The notes under the pieces are model-generated. The model did no database searches, was not told where the DNA came from, and worked only from the letters and a program-made list of their open reading frames with translations. DNA of 64,000 nt from Guillardia theta CCMP2712 (Eukaryota > Protista > Cryptophyta): contig NW_005434667.1 of the NCBI RefSeq assembly GCF_000315625.1, forward strand, positions 735,061-799,060, in the 5' to 3' direction. Both the position numbers and the translations under genes were made by a program. Below are positions 1 to 58,472 of the stretch, one piece after another. Within the stretch, counting starts at the first letter, position 1. The number at the start of each line of letters is the position of its first letter.

Positions 1-2351
1 AGCAGACCGATCCCCCGTACACATCACACTGACTTCCCGTCCACTGTGCATCACATAGACAACTTTGCGTTGAGTTGAGGCCAGGGACGCAGGTTCCGTG
101 CCCTCCGCAGTCGAGCGCACAAGAGGCATTCGCATTGACGGAGCAATCCACGCCACCCCACCCGCTATCGCACACGCAGACAGCAGTAGAAACGTTGGTA
201 GTGCAAACCCCGTGTCCTGAGCAGTCTCTAACGCACCCAGTGACGCTGCAGTCCCCGCCTACCCATCCAAGATCGCAGAGACAGACCCCTACCCGACCCT
301 CGAGACCTATCTGATGCTGGTAAGACAGCGAGGACGCGTGCTCGTCGAACAGCGGAAGACCGAGAGACGTCGCTGGTACACCCGTGAAGCAGCCAAGGAC
401 ATAATTCCAGTTCGTCTCGATCGCTTCGACCCCATCGATCACGAACGTGTATGGCAGACTGGAGTCGACTTGCACCGCTGTGCGGACATGGTAACGATAC
501 GTCCCATCCGCGAGCTGGCGACCATTGCAAACATCGAGTTGGACATCGACGTCCTGCTTTGACCCTGCAAGAGGCCCGTAGATAGGGTATCCGTCCAGCG
601 CGTAGCCCAGCAGGGTCTCCTGGTTCACCTTGGTGTTGCAGCCAAACAAGGGATGGTGATAGTGCCACATGCCGGTGGAGGAGGCGTGGCCGTAGCAAGG
701 GACAGCATTGAGCCCTTCCATCGCGTTGCTTCCATCAGTGAGCAGTGGCCCGAAGATAGGGATCCCATTCAGAGCCACTGCAATCATACCATACTTGGGG
801 AGAGCGAATCTTTTGCCAATGTTTCTTGGGACTGAATGAAGAACGAACCTCCAGCTGAAATCGCAAAGGGGCATGCTTGCACTCGACGCCACAAAGTGGT
901 TGGGAATTCCGTTCGATATGATCTGACGCCTGTCTGCTGAGTCCAGGATCTCAACATTGCTCTGGTGCAGACTTGGTATTCCAAATAAATCTCGCTCGCA
1001 ATTGTCCACCATGTCCATCTTGCTCTTATACCTTGCATTGTGTAAAGACTGATCGTCGAAGATCCAAATATCAGGAAGGAGATCCGATCCGGACCAAAAC
1101 ACGTTTGCTGCACTGTCGAGACAGGTACCATGTCCGGAGCAGTTGTGCTGTTGCCCTAGCCCGCAAGAGATTGCCGGGAGCGAACAGTCAATAGCATAGT
1201 AGCCAGGGTCGCACTCGCAGGTTCTGTTATTCGTACAAATCCCATGAGCAGAGCAATTGTTGAAACATTGCGAGCTCTCACATCCTAAGCCGGAGAATCC
1301 AAAATCACAGGCACATGTTGCATTCGTGCACAAACCATGGCCACTGCAATTGAATGGACAGTCAACAGGCGAGGTGCAATCTACCCCACTCCATCCGAGA
1401 TCACATATGCATGTTCCGTTTTGACAGCTCCCCCTGCCCGAGCAAGATCCTGCACAAGTGCTGCTCGCAACAAAGATCTCACAACCTATTCCAGTCCATT
1501 GAATGTCGCAAGAGCAAGTCCCATTATTACAGGAGCCATGACCACTGCATGAATTGTAACATGACATAGTGTTACAATCCACACCTTCATAGCCGTTTTG
1601 ACAAGTACAGACTCCATCAGAGCAAGTGCCATGGCCAGAGCAATTGTTATAGCACATCTGATTCGAACAATCGCTTCCAGACCAGCCCAAGTCACAATTA
1701 CATTGCCCTGTACTTGAGTCGCAAATCCCATGTTGAGAACAGTTGTTGAGACACAAAGCTAAGGAACAATCTGGCCCAGTAAACCAGAGATCACATACAC
1801 AAATCCCATCTGCATTTGGAAGGCCTACATGACAACAAAACATCAGCATATGAAGCAGCAAGCAAGTTTTATCTACCATGATTTGAGCACTTTTGTGCAG
1901 CGTCGATCACTTCGCATCCTAACCCCAGATATCCCTTGTCACAAGTACAGATTCCCCCAGGGAGACACAAACCATGACCGCTACAATTCCCTGACCCCAG
2001 ACAGATCGCCTGTGAGCATATGGTACCAGTGTACCCTGAATCACATATACATCCTCCCGCACTGGAGCAGGAGCCATGGCCTGAACAGTTACTTGGACAC
2101 AAGGACTGCGAGCAGTTAGCTGAAGTCCATCCTGGACTACACAGGCATCTTGGGCCTCGTTGGCATATTCCATGCCCATAGCAGAATCCTAGATCCTCAC
2201 ATGTACGAACTCTCTCGCATCGCCCACCGGCAAAACCTAATCCGCAATTTACATTGTAGCCTGGCTGCTGGATCACTTGCGACGTTGTGTCACTCGTGCA
2301 ACAAAGAGCCAATATCAGAAAAGCACTTGAGGAGATCGTGTACCCTTTCAT
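1..2351 (-). CDS. Secreted/surface tenascin-type EGF-repeat protein with an internal YHYH domain (3' end runs off the window)
   Basis: Signal-like start MKGYTISSSAFLILALCC; repeated CxxxCSGHGxC...CxCxxG(W/Y/F)xGxxC units; short intron near 1826-1875, then an open frame to base 1. Between about 930 and 380 the frame reads IISNGIPNH...IAVALNGIPIFGP...CYGH...WHYHHP...LLGYALDGYPIYGP...LDVCNGR...GTYRYHV...YVLGCFTG. Confidence 0.85.
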
Positions 2352-6236: not shown

Positions 6237-8094
<1,858 letters not shown>

Positions 8095-8418: not shown

Positions 8419-8460
8419 GTCCCCGTCCCCGTCCCCGTCCCCGTCCCCGTCCCCGTCCCC
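8419..8460. repeat. (GTCCCC)7 microsatellite
   Basis: Seven perfect hexamer copies. Confidence 0.95.
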
Positions 8461-8773
8461 GCTCGCTCCTGCTTCTGGTCCTAATCTATCTCGCTTTTGT
8501 CCTCTTCGTCCTCGTCCCCATGGCCCGCCATACAGGCGCTCCGACCAACGATTCATGACAGGAAATGGGAAACGTTGAGTCGTCGTGTGGGTCTCAGAGG
8601 GGGTGGGTAGAGAAGATCCTTACGGAAGGGGTAGGGGTGGCCCAAAAGTGTGGGGGCGGAAAGCATGATGGTTGCGATCATGGCGAACAGGGAAGGACGA
8701 TGCTCGTGATGGCAGGAATCATTGACTGAAAGCTCGACTAGCCAACTCTTGAGGGTTCCTGTCAACTCAGATC

Positions 8774-9640
8774 ATGAAGCGCTATACTCTTTTCCTGTTA
8801 ATCTTCGCTGTCTCCCTTTTGTATTGTCCGGGATTCGTTTCGTCTAATCTTGATTTATCCTCCTCCTCCTCCAAACATGTTTTTGTGCATCACTTCAATG
8901 CTCGAGACTCCTACAGCTTGATTCAGAAATACAGGAAAAGATCTCAGTGCGACCAGGCAGTCTGCTTGAGAAGTCTCCGGGGTGGAAGCAAGCAACGGTC
9001 ACCAACTAATGCTACTATCATGAAGGTGTTGAATTTCAGCGAAACAGATAGCAATATTTTGTTCAATCGAACCAATTCTTCTGCACCCAAGTATGCATGG
9101 GATGCTAAGAAGAAAGTCTGGATATTGCATAAGCGTCCAACGGACAACTGGTCGGTGGAGAGCTTGAAGTCACGTTGGAATTTTGCACCAGACGAATGCC
9201 TGGTCTTCCGGCACAGGAAACCTGACAAGTGGCAGGAAATTCCTGGCGCTCCTGGCTGGCTGGGCTGCCTGGAGTTCTGCATGTTTGTGACGCCCATCAT
9301 GAACTTTGTGCTCTTCATGATCCGCGGGTTCAACGTCTGCGCTGTCTGCGGGAAGAAACGTAGCCAACACCCGCTGAGGAGCTCGAGGGATGCGGATCGT
9401 GCTTTCTGGGAAGCGGTTGTAGACAGGGACATCGAGCTGGCAGTGAGAATTGTGCGAGGGGGGCTGGAATGTCCTCCCGGAGGACACAACTTCTGTCTCG
9501 TGACCTTCCTCATCGCCAACTACTGCAAAGACGCGTTCAAGAACGTCCCTGACCTGGACCAAGAAATGGCCCACTACCACCTGAACCATCCGCCAGAGTT
9601 TAAGAGAGGATGGTTCGGTTACTACAACCCTTACCTTTGA
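8774..9640 (+). CDS. Hypothetical protein with signal peptide, Ser/His-rich leader ending in LRSLRGG, a hydrophobic segment and CxxC
   Basis: Single 288-aa ORF; hydrophobic N-terminus MKRYTLFLLIFAVSLLYC; VCAVCGK motif. Confidence 0.7.
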   Translation: MKRYTLFLLIFAVSLLYCPGFVSSNLDLSSSSSKHVFVHHFNARDSYSLIQKYRKRSQCDQAVCLRSLRGGSKQRSPTNATIMKVLNFSETDSNILFNRTNSSAPKYAWDAKKKVWILHKRPTDNWSVESLKSRWNFAPDECLVFRHRKPDKWQEIPGAPGWLGCLEFCMFVTPIMNFVLFMIRGFNVCAVCGKKRSQHPLRSSRDADRAFWEAVVDRDIELAVRIVRGGLECPPGGHNFCLVTFLIANYCKDAFKNVPDLDQEMAHYHLNHPPEFKRGWFGYYNPYL

Positions 9641-10139
9641 CTCGATGGATGTCTTGCGAATACAAGATGCATTCCCACAAGCTCCGATACCTCAACCCTT
9701 AGCTCTAGGGTGCGTAGACTCTGATCAATACTGATGCAGCGATACGATGCAAGTCCACGTCATGCTGATGGTGCGGAGATGTTGTTTGAGAATCACGAAT
9801 TTGTAGCATCCTCGTACACTTTCATTATTATTCAACATATGAACTCGTTCAGTGCGTGGTCCTTGGCCCGCTGAATCAACTTTGCTCTGTTGAAGGAAAG
9901 AAGCACATCACTGCAGCATCGGATTCATCAAGAGAAGCTGTCACTCTAGCAACTGTCATTGCTACCATTGCTACGACCAGATCGAGTTGACTAGCTAGTA
10001 GTAGTCTTGTGAGAACATAAGAGCTGGTTCGATGTCGGACGAATAGGCAATTTCCTGTTAAAGTTTTAGGCAGAAAAGCTTGAAAAGAGGTTTAAATTTA
10101 CTGAAATGTGACTAAAATAACTCGTCCAACGGCTGAGCA

Positions 10140-42638: not shown

Positions 42639-43929
42639 TTATTGAGACTTGGCTTTCTTGGACGCCTTCTCTGGTTTCTCTGGTTTTGCACTCTTGCTGC
42701 TTGATGTCTTCGATTTTTTCAAAGTTTTCTCCTTCACTGGCGCCTCAGGCTTGTCTGCATCATACCTGCAATTCGCAATCAACATAACTAAGTTTCACAT
42801 CTCGTTTCATTCACTTGGCCCTTTCTTCGGCATATTTCTCCTTCAGCTTAGCTGCTTCCTTTTCATAAACCTGTGCCATTAAGCTAAGAAAATACTTGAG
42901 ATCAACAAACATCAACCTCTTTCTGCTGTGCAGACATTCCGTTCCAGTCCGCAGCAATCTTAAAAATGGGAGATTTCAGTCAAGCACTTATTCAAAGTGA
43001 TCGATCTCGTTACCTTCTTGCCCATCTCAGCAAAGGTCAATTCAGGGTTGGCACTCTTGATCTTATCTCGGACCTTCTGCGACATCAGCAGGAAGCAGGA
43101 GAACCTGATGAGATATTGCCTGGTTGGAATAAATCATGAAAGCTGACAGTGGCCGTTTTGGTGCGTTCGGATCCTTGGCGGGTTTTCCTGAGGAGCCTGT
43201 TCTCAAATTTTGAAGGTGAAGGAATCAAAGGGAACCTTCTTTCTTCTTCTTGGCTTTCTCTGTCCTTTCTTTCCGAACTTCTTCTGGGACCTGAAGAAAT
43301 CGTGAAAAAAAACACTTCACAGCATTCAAAAAAAGTGAAACCTTGGCCTCGTATTCTGCCTTCTCCTTCTCATATTCTGATTTGAGTTTCGCAGCCTCAT
43401 TTTCGAACTTCTTCTTTCCATCTGCAACACGACATCAAAACAAGTTTCGTGGATATAAGACAATAAGTACCCGCACTCAAAACTTTCCACTTGTCACCGA
43501 TTACTTTTGAAATCTCTGTCATCTTGGATGAAGCAATTGAGCACATAACAACACAAAAACATAATAATAACAAACCTTCATTTCAGGATTTTTCTTTACG
43601 ATGTCTGCCCTCACTTCATTCGCGTAAAGCATGTATGCGGACAAGGCACGCTTAGGCGCTTGAATATCCTAAAGTTTGCAGATCACGATGCAAGATGTCA
43701 GGGTAAATATCTTTGATGTTATTATCACCTTGTACTTATCATCTTCTGCATTCTTTTTCTTTGATGCTCCTCCTCTCAGATGCAAGTTGTTTCTGTTCAG
43801 GGTCCTGCTGCATTGCGAACCACTACTCTTCTGGTATGCGTTCACAGAGCTGATCGATGCAAGAGTAATCGTTGCACAAACGACGAAGAAAACACACTTT
43901 GCGTTAGAGACCATCTTGCCGGGGATCAT
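42639..43929 (-). CDS. Two-HMG-box DNA-binding protein with signal peptide and leader ending LHLRGG
   Basis: Leader MVSNAKCVFFVVCATITLASISSVNA|YQ...NLHLRGG. Box 1 APKRALSAYMLYANEVR...NPEMKMTEISKVIGDKWK. Box 2 DPNAPKRPLSAFM...VRDKIKSANPELTFAEMGKKIAADW. Lys-rich tail. Confidence 0.9.
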
Positions 43930-56880: not shown

Positions 56881-57056
56881 GTAGATGGATAGTGTCATAC
56901 ATATTCAAATTACACTTTATCACTATTGGCAAAATTCCTCGCTTTGTAGGTTCCTGGGACAGATCAGCTGTGTTCTGATTTTTCTATCTTTCTGAGGGGG
57001 TGAAGGTAGTTGCAAGGTGGGTGGGGTTTTCGTTGTGGTACGCAGTGGGGGCTGGA

Positions 57057-58472
57057 ATGGTCGAAATGCAGCGACAATGGCGGCGGCTTCGGGGAGGCAG
57101 CAGAGCAGTCAGGATGCTGGGGATGCTGGCCATGGTGGCAGGTGTAGCAGGAGGATCAGTAGGAACCCTCCCCGCAGCTCCTTCCCCAGGAGTTGACTTC
57201 TCTGGGGTCGTGGAGGGCGTGAAGGAGTTTCTAAAGGGAGGAGTAGCCAATGGGTTGGGAGCGTTCTCAGTTTTCCCCATCGATCTCGCAAAGACTCGCA
57301 TCCAGGATCAGAGGATTGTTGCAGGAAGTGAGGTGATGTATAAGAACATCTTCGACACCATTGCAAAGGTCGCGTCCAAGGAGGGGATCCCAGCTCTCTA
57401 CAGCGGGGTAACCCCAGTTCTGATCGGTGCAGCTCCGGAGGGTGCCATGCAGATCGGAACGAACAACGTTGTTCGCAGCAAGTTGGCAGAGATGAGGGGT
57501 ACCACGATAGACAAGCTCCCTCTCTCTCACGACATGTTCGCCGGAGCATGCGGAGGTTTAGCTCAAGTTGTTGTCAGCACACCCATGGACAGGGTGAAGA
57601 TTTTGCAGCAAGTGATGGGGAAGGAGTCAGGAAATGCTATGCAGATTGTGCAGCAAGTTGGCCTCTCTGGGTTGTACCAAGGAGCCAAGGCTTGCGTGCT
57701 CCGTGACGTCTTCTTTGCGGCCCTCTACTTCCCCATCTACTACCGTGTCAAGTCAGCGTTGCAGGAGGTCGGATCCAAGAAGGGGCAGAAGAGACAAGAG
57801 AACTTGTTGGACGCTCTGGTTGCTGGACTTGCTGCGGTGAGCTCCTTCCTTTCCTTCCTTCCTTCCCTTCCTTCCATCCTGCCACCCTCGCCCTCCATTT
57901 TAGATCTGTCCTCTCATCTGCCCCCCTGCCGCTCCTCCTGATTGGCTGTCGATGTGCAGGGAGTGCCTGCAGCGTCGCTCACGTGCCCCTTCGATGTGAT
58001 CAAGACGAGGATGCAGTCCTGTGGCGTTGGAACGAAGGGCTGCGACGTAATGGTTGCCAGGTGAAGGACCGCTTTATTGCCGGCGCTAGGACGCTGACGT
58101 CTCTTGCTCTCCTCGCTGACATCTCGTTCTCCCAGCATCCGTTCCACTGCTGCCGAGCTATGGGCAGAGGGCCAGGCGAGAGCCTTTTTCAAGGGCCTGA
58201 CTGGACGTGTTGGACGCGTTGCTCCTCAGGTGAGGCACTCCCGGTCAAGGAGGGTGAGGAAGGAAGACGGCGAATAGGGACAGGGGAGGGAGCAAGGAAG
58301 GGGGCAGGGGGCAGGGGGCAGGGGGAAGGGGGAAGGGGGAAGGTTGGCACAGGAAGGGGGAAGGGCAACTGGCAGGGGCAGGGGCAGGGGACTAACGATT
58401 TCTTTCCAGCTCGCGATCTGCCTTGTGGTGGTGGAAGCGCTCAACATCGCGTTTCCTCCCAAGGGAAAGTGA
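57057..58472 (+). CDS. Mitochondrial carrier family protein, aspartate/glutamate-carrier-like, no EF hands, hydrophobic leader
   Basis: FPIDLAKTRIQ, IGAAPE, TPMDRVKI, ACVLRDVFFAALYFPIY, CPFDVIKTRMQ, RVGRVAPQ; three introns; ends PPKGK*. Confidence 0.85.

Follow-up and report, generated by a model that had tools for sequence, protein, structure and literature searches.

[quoted passage not shown]

Introduction

The last six residues of ubiquitin are LRLRGG. Within a stretch of 64,000 nucleotides of the Guillardia theta CCMP2712 genome (contig NW_005434667.1, positions 735,061 to 799,060 of the forward strand; hereafter the window), a gene localized at 8774–9640 encodes a signal-peptide protein, the leader of which is closed by a very similar motif, LRSLRGG. 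This raises the question of whether a ubiquitin-tail-like end is a working part of the leader and, if so, which proteins carry it and what kind of enzyme could read it. The sorting of proteins between the periplastid compartment and the plastid is known in outline only, i.e., by the absence of an aromatic residue at position +1, and we know of no account of how or where periplastid leaders are removed. A signal peptide brings periplastid proteins into the endoplasmic reticulum (ER), and SELMA, a ubiquitin-dependent machinery derived from ERAD, then takes them across the next membrane (PMC12412216, PMC5487736). An LRLRGG mark in such a ubiquitin-run translocon system gives a sequence rule with which the periplastid and nucleomorph proteome can be listed, as well as a precise candidate cut site and a short list of enzyme families.

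In the full-text literature that was searched, which lacks many subscription papers, no description of LRGG or LRLRGG as a leader mark was found, and the nearest published remark concerns a single RGG in the Toxoplasma protein PUBL (PMC5487736). The LRGG leader end is probably a site, not described before, at which proteins bound for the relict cytoplasm of the endosymbiont are processed or sorted.

The Gene at 8774–9640 and Its Leader

The gene occupies positions 8774–9640 of the forward strand and encodes 288 amino acids plus a stop codon in a single exon, as indicated by the list of open reading frames (ORFs), a public JGI contig and a transcript product of Hanusia phi. After the preceding in-frame stop codon, the first ATG is that at 8774; the ORF ends at 9640. 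As the JGI contig (1010 nt) is 100% identical to and colinear with positions 8673–9682 of the window, the gene is intronless. The contig extends 101 nt upstream of the ATG and 42 nt downstream of the stop codon, and its ends look like those of an mRNA. The closest homologue of the encoded protein is the Hanusia phi transcript product, which is colinear with it over the full length (73% identity). As regards the surroundings of the gene, an intergenic (CCCCGT)n microsatellite (8421–8462) lies about 300 nt upstream, and the adjoining ORF (7267–8094, reverse strand) resembles a guanylate kinase, judging by eye from its P-loop GxxGxGK and an HTTR motif.

Residues 1–24 (8774–8845, forward strand) constitute the signal peptide, as recognized from Kyte-Doolittle hydrophobicity and the alignment of homologues. 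Its hydrophobic core (residues 6–17; best 9-residue window of 3.0 on the Kyte-Doolittle scale) is preceded by K2 and R3, small residues occupy positions −3 and −1, and V22 and S24 are invariant across the four aligned homologues. It should be noted that signal peptides in this work were called by a hydrophobicity rule, which is a heuristic, in place of a trained predictor. The signal peptide is probably cut at VSS|N (site judged by eye), with Asn, which is not aromatic, at +1. It is followed by a variable spacer resembling a transit peptide in its composition (residues 25–64; 8846–8965, forward strand), which is rich in Ser, His, Arg and Lys and cannot be aligned among the homologues. Past the hydrophobic core the leader contains 11 Ser/Thr, 7 Lys/Arg (plus His) and 3 Asp/Glu. 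It thus shares two features with the periplastid class, namely an ER signal peptide (heuristic call) and a hydroxylated, net-positive and acid-poor transit-like region.

The leader ends with LRSLRGG (residues 65–71; 8966–8986, forward strand), which was read directly from the codons TTG AGA AGT CTC CGG GGT GGA. When compared with the ubiquitin tail LRLRGG, the last four residues are the same and one residue is inserted in the hexapeptide. The leader copies only the tail of ubiquitin and not its fold: no beta-grasp fold precedes the motif, as there was no Pfam ubiquitin match and residues 25–71 were unstructured in an AlphaFold2 (AF2) model (pLDDT 22–32, with the spacer below 30). The order of elements given in the preliminary description, namely a signal peptide, a Ser/His-rich stretch and LRSLRGG at 8966–8986, is exact. 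The same description placed the presumed mature protein immediately after the motif; the protein indeed continues there, but its conserved domain starts only about 35 residues past GG (at Y107). The intervening variable linker (residues 72–106; 8987–9091, forward strand) carries, according to the translation, four N-x-S/T sequons (N79, N87, N98 and N101), all within the 25 residues straight after the motif, and the Hanusia phi protein also has four in this region. These sequons may hint at glycosylation of the protein en route through the ER.

Conservation of the LRGG Motif in the Cargo Family

The cargo family was collected independently of the motif. A profile of the conserved domain was compared with 1.84 billion representative proteins, which yielded 20 clusters only; among these relatives cryptophyte identity is certain for Hanusia phi only, and the other homologues are metagenomic. 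LRGG was found ahead of the domain in 13 of the 17 members having an N-terminal extension, and one further member had LRLRGC. When each leader was shuffled 2000 times, on average 0.24 and at most 3 of the 16 scored leaders had LRGG.

The motif lies 15–70 residues past the signal peptide and 35–140 residues ahead of the domain. The residues separating GG from the folded domain are variable, and the motif does not abut the domain. The rest of the leader is unalignable across the family, and in two distant homologues the motif occupies another alignment column than in Guillardia and Hanusia. As its position floats, it is the motif itself that is conserved and not an alignment column. The family consensus is L-R-L-R-G-G, with position −5 relaxed (S, H, G, V, A or Y) in a third of the members. 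Similarly, metagenomic strains of one member vary at −5 (A or S) and retain LRGG. In one metagenomic member, tandem motifs are present within residues 57–80 (LVLRGG and, 8 residues on, LRLRGG). No further clear leaders were recognized in the genes adjoining a homologue on the metagenomic contigs.

Genome-Wide Recurrence of the Motif

In the next step, the genome (87 Mb) was scanned with a DNA pattern for (L/F)(R/S)(L/F)(R/S)GG, which stands for LRLRGG. It gave 353 matches, compared with 92 for LRLRGA and 140 for RLRLGG, two controls of the same composition, and the excess of LRLRGG over these controls is therefore 210–260. GGNGG words are common in the G. theta genome, and the backward control pattern gave 255 matches.

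The first 20 LRLRGG matches were inspected within 10 kb of surrounding sequence, the total sampled DNA being only 264 kb. LRGG was read in 18 of them, and a start codon with a signal peptide was located in the same open frame, 31–111 residues upstream, in 12 of these 18 loci according to the hydrophobicity rule and in 13 of 18 by eye. A random position has such a context in 2.9% (all frames) or 8.2% (long ORFs) of cases, which gives P of about 1e-9. The other five LRGG loci had no Met with a signal peptide in frame and may represent cases with an upstream exon or chance matches. Moreover, about 20 other LRGG words occurring in the six frames of the 264 kb sample had no signal-peptide context. 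When 13/20 is extrapolated to the 353 matches, about 230 leaders are expected, a figure in line with the excess over the controls. As both leaders of the window (with S and H at −5) fall outside the pattern, the class must be larger than the pattern count. The codons of the motif vary from gene to gene, and thus the motif is maintained gene by gene and has not spread as a DNA cassette.

These results support the view that LRGG is an end-mark kept by selection and found again and again on the signal-peptide leaders of unrelated proteins. The association of the motif with leaders, proposed in the preliminary description, goes beyond chance by three measures (13/17 versus 0.24 in the family shuffles, 353 versus 92 and 140 in the pattern counts, and 12–13 of 18 sampled loci), and its reservation that two cases were suggestive only was an understatement. 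A reading of LRGG as a chance or low-complexity artefact, to which the brevity of the motif (four residues) and the abundance of GGNGG words with the backward control of 255 might lend some credit, is rejected by these same shuffles, counts and loci and is extremely improbable.

A separate observation concerns a gene of the mitochondrial carrier family within the window (57054–57930, forward strand), the N-terminus of which reads M..RRLRGG, with the motif preceding the sole N-terminal hydrophobic stretch. This could be a chance occurrence in a long basic n-region or a leader with its signal peptide in an upstream exon.

The anatomy of the leader class was computed on 15 leaders. The spacers past the hydrophobic core comprise 11–85 residues (median of about 25), with 15% Ser, 12% Arg and 3.6% Lys, and 8 of the 15 leaders have no Lys between the signal peptide and the motif. 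The residue following GG is varied, and Pro was found there in none of the 15. Two sampled leaders read H-V-L-R-L-R-G-G and the HMG leader of the window reads L-H-L-R-G-G, which recalls L-H-L-V-L-R-L-R-G-G of ubiquitin, although these are too few cases.

Cargoes of the LRGG Leaders

The second leader of the window (43768–43929, reverse strand) was recognized by direct reading and consists of a signal peptide, a spacer of about 23 residues and LHLRGG at 43785–43768, and an HMG-box exon follows downstream after an intron on the same strand. The preliminary description had pointed to this unrelated HMG gene as having the same layout, which holds true. One possible signal-peptide cut in this leader, VNA|Y, would put Tyr at +1.

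Among the sampled loci, a leader-bearing EF-1alpha was found on contig 3 near 1065284 (L015:4832–5140, reverse strand) with the GTP_EFTU profile, which begins at the fourth residue past GG. In this protein LRLRGG is directly abutted by GKEK, which is the native N-terminus of EF-1alpha once Met is removed. Public metagenome contigs were scanned for the junction L-x-L-R-G-G-G-K-E-K and 85 DNA stretches matched; among the 80 listed there was one true EF-1alpha, the remainder being chance matches. In this metagenomic orthologue (contig L071:1287–1598, reverse strand) the junction LRLRGG|GKEK is kept, while the 20 leader residues preceding the motif are only about one-third identical. Further cargoes of LRGG leaders include a SAM methyltransferase and a RETICULATA-like protein.

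An EF-1alpha with an ER signal peptide would be useless in the secretory lumen; as the periplastid compartment of cryptophytes contains 80S ribosomes, this compartment is its sensible destination. The EF-1alpha and HMG-box cargoes make sense only in the periplastid compartment or the nucleomorph. Together with the cryptophyte origin of the closest homologue of the gene at 8774–9640, they bear out the link to a complex plastid of red algal origin that had been proposed for the motif.

Within the 264 kb sample, LRGG was absent from plastid-type leaders, i.e., ASA|F on a light-harvesting protein and ASA|W on another protein (L017:9313, forward strand, and L012:1057, reverse strand), and from several secreted EGF-like proteins with signal peptides. 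Within the window itself, two Cys-rich, EGF-like secreted proteins (1–2351, reverse strand) have signal peptides without LRGG. The numbers are small, and the split between plastid or secreted proteins and LRGG proteins fits what would be expected if LRGG marked the periplastid class.

Proposed Role of the Motif and Candidate Enzymes

Taking these data together, we lean towards regarding the stretch 8774–8986 as a periplastid-class bipartite import leader that is ended by a ubiquitin-tail mark and cut after GG by a tail-reading cysteine protease. The signal peptide would take the protein into the ER, and the loose, positively charged spacer would carry it over the periplastid membrane via SELMA. 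The leader would be closed by LRSLRGG, a mark whose consensus, both genome-wide and among related algae, is LRLRGG. A periplastid cysteine protease reading the extended tail of ubiquitin would then cut past the second Gly, releasing the mature protein. The parts of this proposal differ in strength. It is very probable that the LRGG motif has a function within the leader, and the LRGG-leader class is likely to go to the periplastid compartment or the nucleomorph. For cleavage after GG by a protease of the deubiquitinase type, where we infer both the cut and the kind of enzyme, the chances are at best even.

Three features are consistent with cleavage after GG by a ubiquitin-tail protease: the motif is the full hexapeptide, GG is strictly needed, and EF-1alpha has its native end at GG+1. 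Enzymes of the USP and UCH types, as well as viral papain-like proteases, read the extended tail of ubiquitin. Three points speak against a deubiquitinase. Most deubiquitinases require the folded ubiquitin body, which is absent here; a similar RGG in Toxoplasma PUBL is neither processed nor required (PMC5487736); and the leaders devoid of Lys are at odds with the idea that ubiquitin attached to leader lysines leaves along with the leader.

ptDUP, the one periplastid deubiquitinase known from the literature, is missing from cryptophytes, where its authors expect "an alternative enzyme" (PMC12412216); the LRGG mark may explain this absence. A putative deubiquitinase that contains an Ufm1-peptidase domain, and to which no role has been assigned, is encoded in each of the four sequenced cryptophyte nucleomorphs (PMC6559170), and this nucleomorph-encoded protein (Gt2_270 in that paper) is a candidate for the putative leader-removing protease. 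In the nuclear genome there is one Peptidase_C78 gene, and on contigs 1–22 no USP-family gene was located within 5 kb of the LRLRGG matches listed. In its most general form, the proposal would be that cryptophytes tag proteins bound for the periplastid compartment or the nucleomorph with a ubiquitin tail and that a dedicated tail protease residing there removes the leader after SELMA transport, which we put forward tentatively, the odds being somewhat against it. If this were true, the sequence motif alone would suffice to define the periplastid proteome of several hundred genes, and the ERAD-derived importer would have co-opted both ubiquitin conjugation and the processing of ubiquitin precursors.

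Alternative Readings

The motif might remain uncut and serve as a sorting or retention signal, which either holds the protein in the periplastid compartment or provides a handle for ubiquitin-binding parts of SELMA. Several observations speak for it: the motif distinguishes non-plastid-type leaders from the ASA|F and ASA|W leaders in the sample, some spacers, of 11–12 residues only, could not hold a classical transit peptide, in which case the motif may itself be the signal, and the orphan cargo family has a long variable stretch past GG. Furthermore, the RGG that lies ahead of the ubiquitin-like domain of Toxoplasma PUBL was considered a deubiquitinase site and turned out to be neither processed nor required (PMC5487736). 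However, the native N-terminus of EF-1alpha lies exactly at GG+1 in two species, which is predicted by a cut site and not by a tag, and retention of a leader of 40–110 residues on EF-1alpha or an HMG box seems costly. We consider this reading unlikely, although it is the strongest of the alternatives.

Nearly as much weight, and still little, can be given to a cut at LRGG by a processing peptidase other than a deubiquitinase, i.e., a periplastid counterpart of the stromal and mitochondrial metallopeptidases or another endopeptidase. The likeness to the ubiquitin tail (Arg at −3 and small residues at −1 and −2) would then be convergent. Most deubiquitinases cleave short linear LRGG peptides poorly, which, along with the lack of a ubiquitin fold ahead of the motif, the lack of ptDUP in cryptophytes and the relaxed −5 position in a third of the family members, is in favor of such an enzyme. 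On the other hand, the consensus is the full hexapeptide LRLRGG and not RGG alone, and GG is not exchangeable for GA genome-wide (353 versus 92), as predicted by the narrow cleft of a ubiquitin-type protease. No metallopeptidase with LRLRGG specificity is known to us.

With regard to the gene at 8774–9640 alone, it is improbable that its product is a membrane glycoprotein of the ER or secretory pathway in which LRSLRGG is an inherited decoration without a role. The four sequons clustered past the motif here and in Hanusia phi are what such a protein might carry, the hydrophobic helix at residues 162–186 could be a membrane anchor, and no known cargo function ties the protein to the periplastid compartment. 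Against this, LRGG is retained in 13 of 17 family members despite its shifting position and changing surroundings, the helix contains Glu and His, which is not membrane-like, in several homologues, and glycosylated proteins are known to enter the complex plastids of diatoms.

Three other explanations were considered and rejected. Signal peptidase is not expected to cut at LRGG, since Arg at −3 violates the −3/−1 rule. An RxLR or PEXEL reading, in which the conserved core would be R-x-L-R or R-x-L-x-E/Q/D, fails because the HMG-box gene and most family members do not have Arg at the required place, the conserved core being L-R-G-G. A double-glycine leader processed by a C39 peptidase was discarded as PF03412 has no match in the nuclear genome, whereas control genomes do match.

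Comparison with Known Leader Systems

The preferred reading, a periplastid-class leader ended by a ubiquitin-tail mark, was compared with systems that share some of its features. Among these are the periplastid-class signals of complex plastids derived from red algae, in which the +1 residue is non-aromatic (as would hold here for the likely cut VSS|N). They likewise consist of a signal peptide and a Ser/Arg-rich, acid-poor spacer, carry cargoes of cytosolic or nuclear types and occur in algae using SELMA. In their published definition, however, no conserved terminal motif was found, whereas the leaders described here end with the ubiquitin tail and have spacers of down to 11 residues.

In linear ubiquitin fusions (polyubiquitin, Ub-L40 and Ub-S27a), which deubiquitinases cleave after LRLRGG, the hexapeptide is also localized directly ahead of the released protein and GG is strictly needed, and a cut in EF-1alpha would similarly yield the native N-terminus. 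They differ in that in LRGG leaders a signal peptide and a disordered spacer replace the ubiquitin fold, and the compartment concerned is the periplastid space. In Toxoplasma PUBL, as here, a complex-plastid leader is followed by RGG, but this is a single protein and RGG was not reported as a general feature of leaders.

PEXEL/TEXEL motifs (processed by plasmepsin V and ASP5) and oomycete RxLR motifs resemble LRGG in that a short motif 15–70 residues past the signal peptide marks a sorting class. PEXEL is also a cut site, as we presume LRGG to be. RSLR of the gene at 8774–9640 fits R-x-L-R, but this fit is not general for the LRGG class; moreover, the consensus differs, the PEXEL enzyme is an aspartic protease of the ER, and the destination is outside the cell. 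Finally, the double-glycine leaders of bacteriocins and cyanobacterial peptides (peptidase C39) share the end of the leader (a hydrophobic residue, any residue and G-G) and are cut after GG by a papain-like cysteine protease; unlike LRGG leaders, they have no signal peptide, and Peptidase_C39 is absent from the G. theta nuclear genome.

The Orphan Cargo Domain

The conserved domain of the protein (residues 107–288; 9092–9637, forward strand) was delimited with the use of the family alignment and an AF2 model. This cargo is an orphan with no recognized domain or fold: there was no Pfam match and no ESM Atlas match, and comparison with PDB sequence profiles gave nothing usable (best E-value of 0.72). 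The AF2 model built from 4 sequences was unusable (pLDDT 36), and the one built from 15 sequences reached a pLDDT of 68.5. With the latter model, Foldseek found no usable fold match (best E-value of 1.4), and a VIA-wide structure search gave only trivial helical hairpins (best Z of 3.6). Judging from the leader alone, we infer that the product of 8774–9640 is likely to be periplastid, residing in the compartment or in one of its membranes, and the LRGG leader thus places this orphan family among the likely periplastid proteins.

The domain is composed of a small beta hairpin, a long hydrophobic helix (approximately residues 162–186) and a helical C-terminal part. The helix is not clearly a membrane span, because Glu and His occur in it in several homologues. 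The domain contains an invariant C-A-V-C..R..H motif, and a conserved P-[YF]-L was found at the very C-terminus (9629–9637), which may be a second sorting or binding signal.
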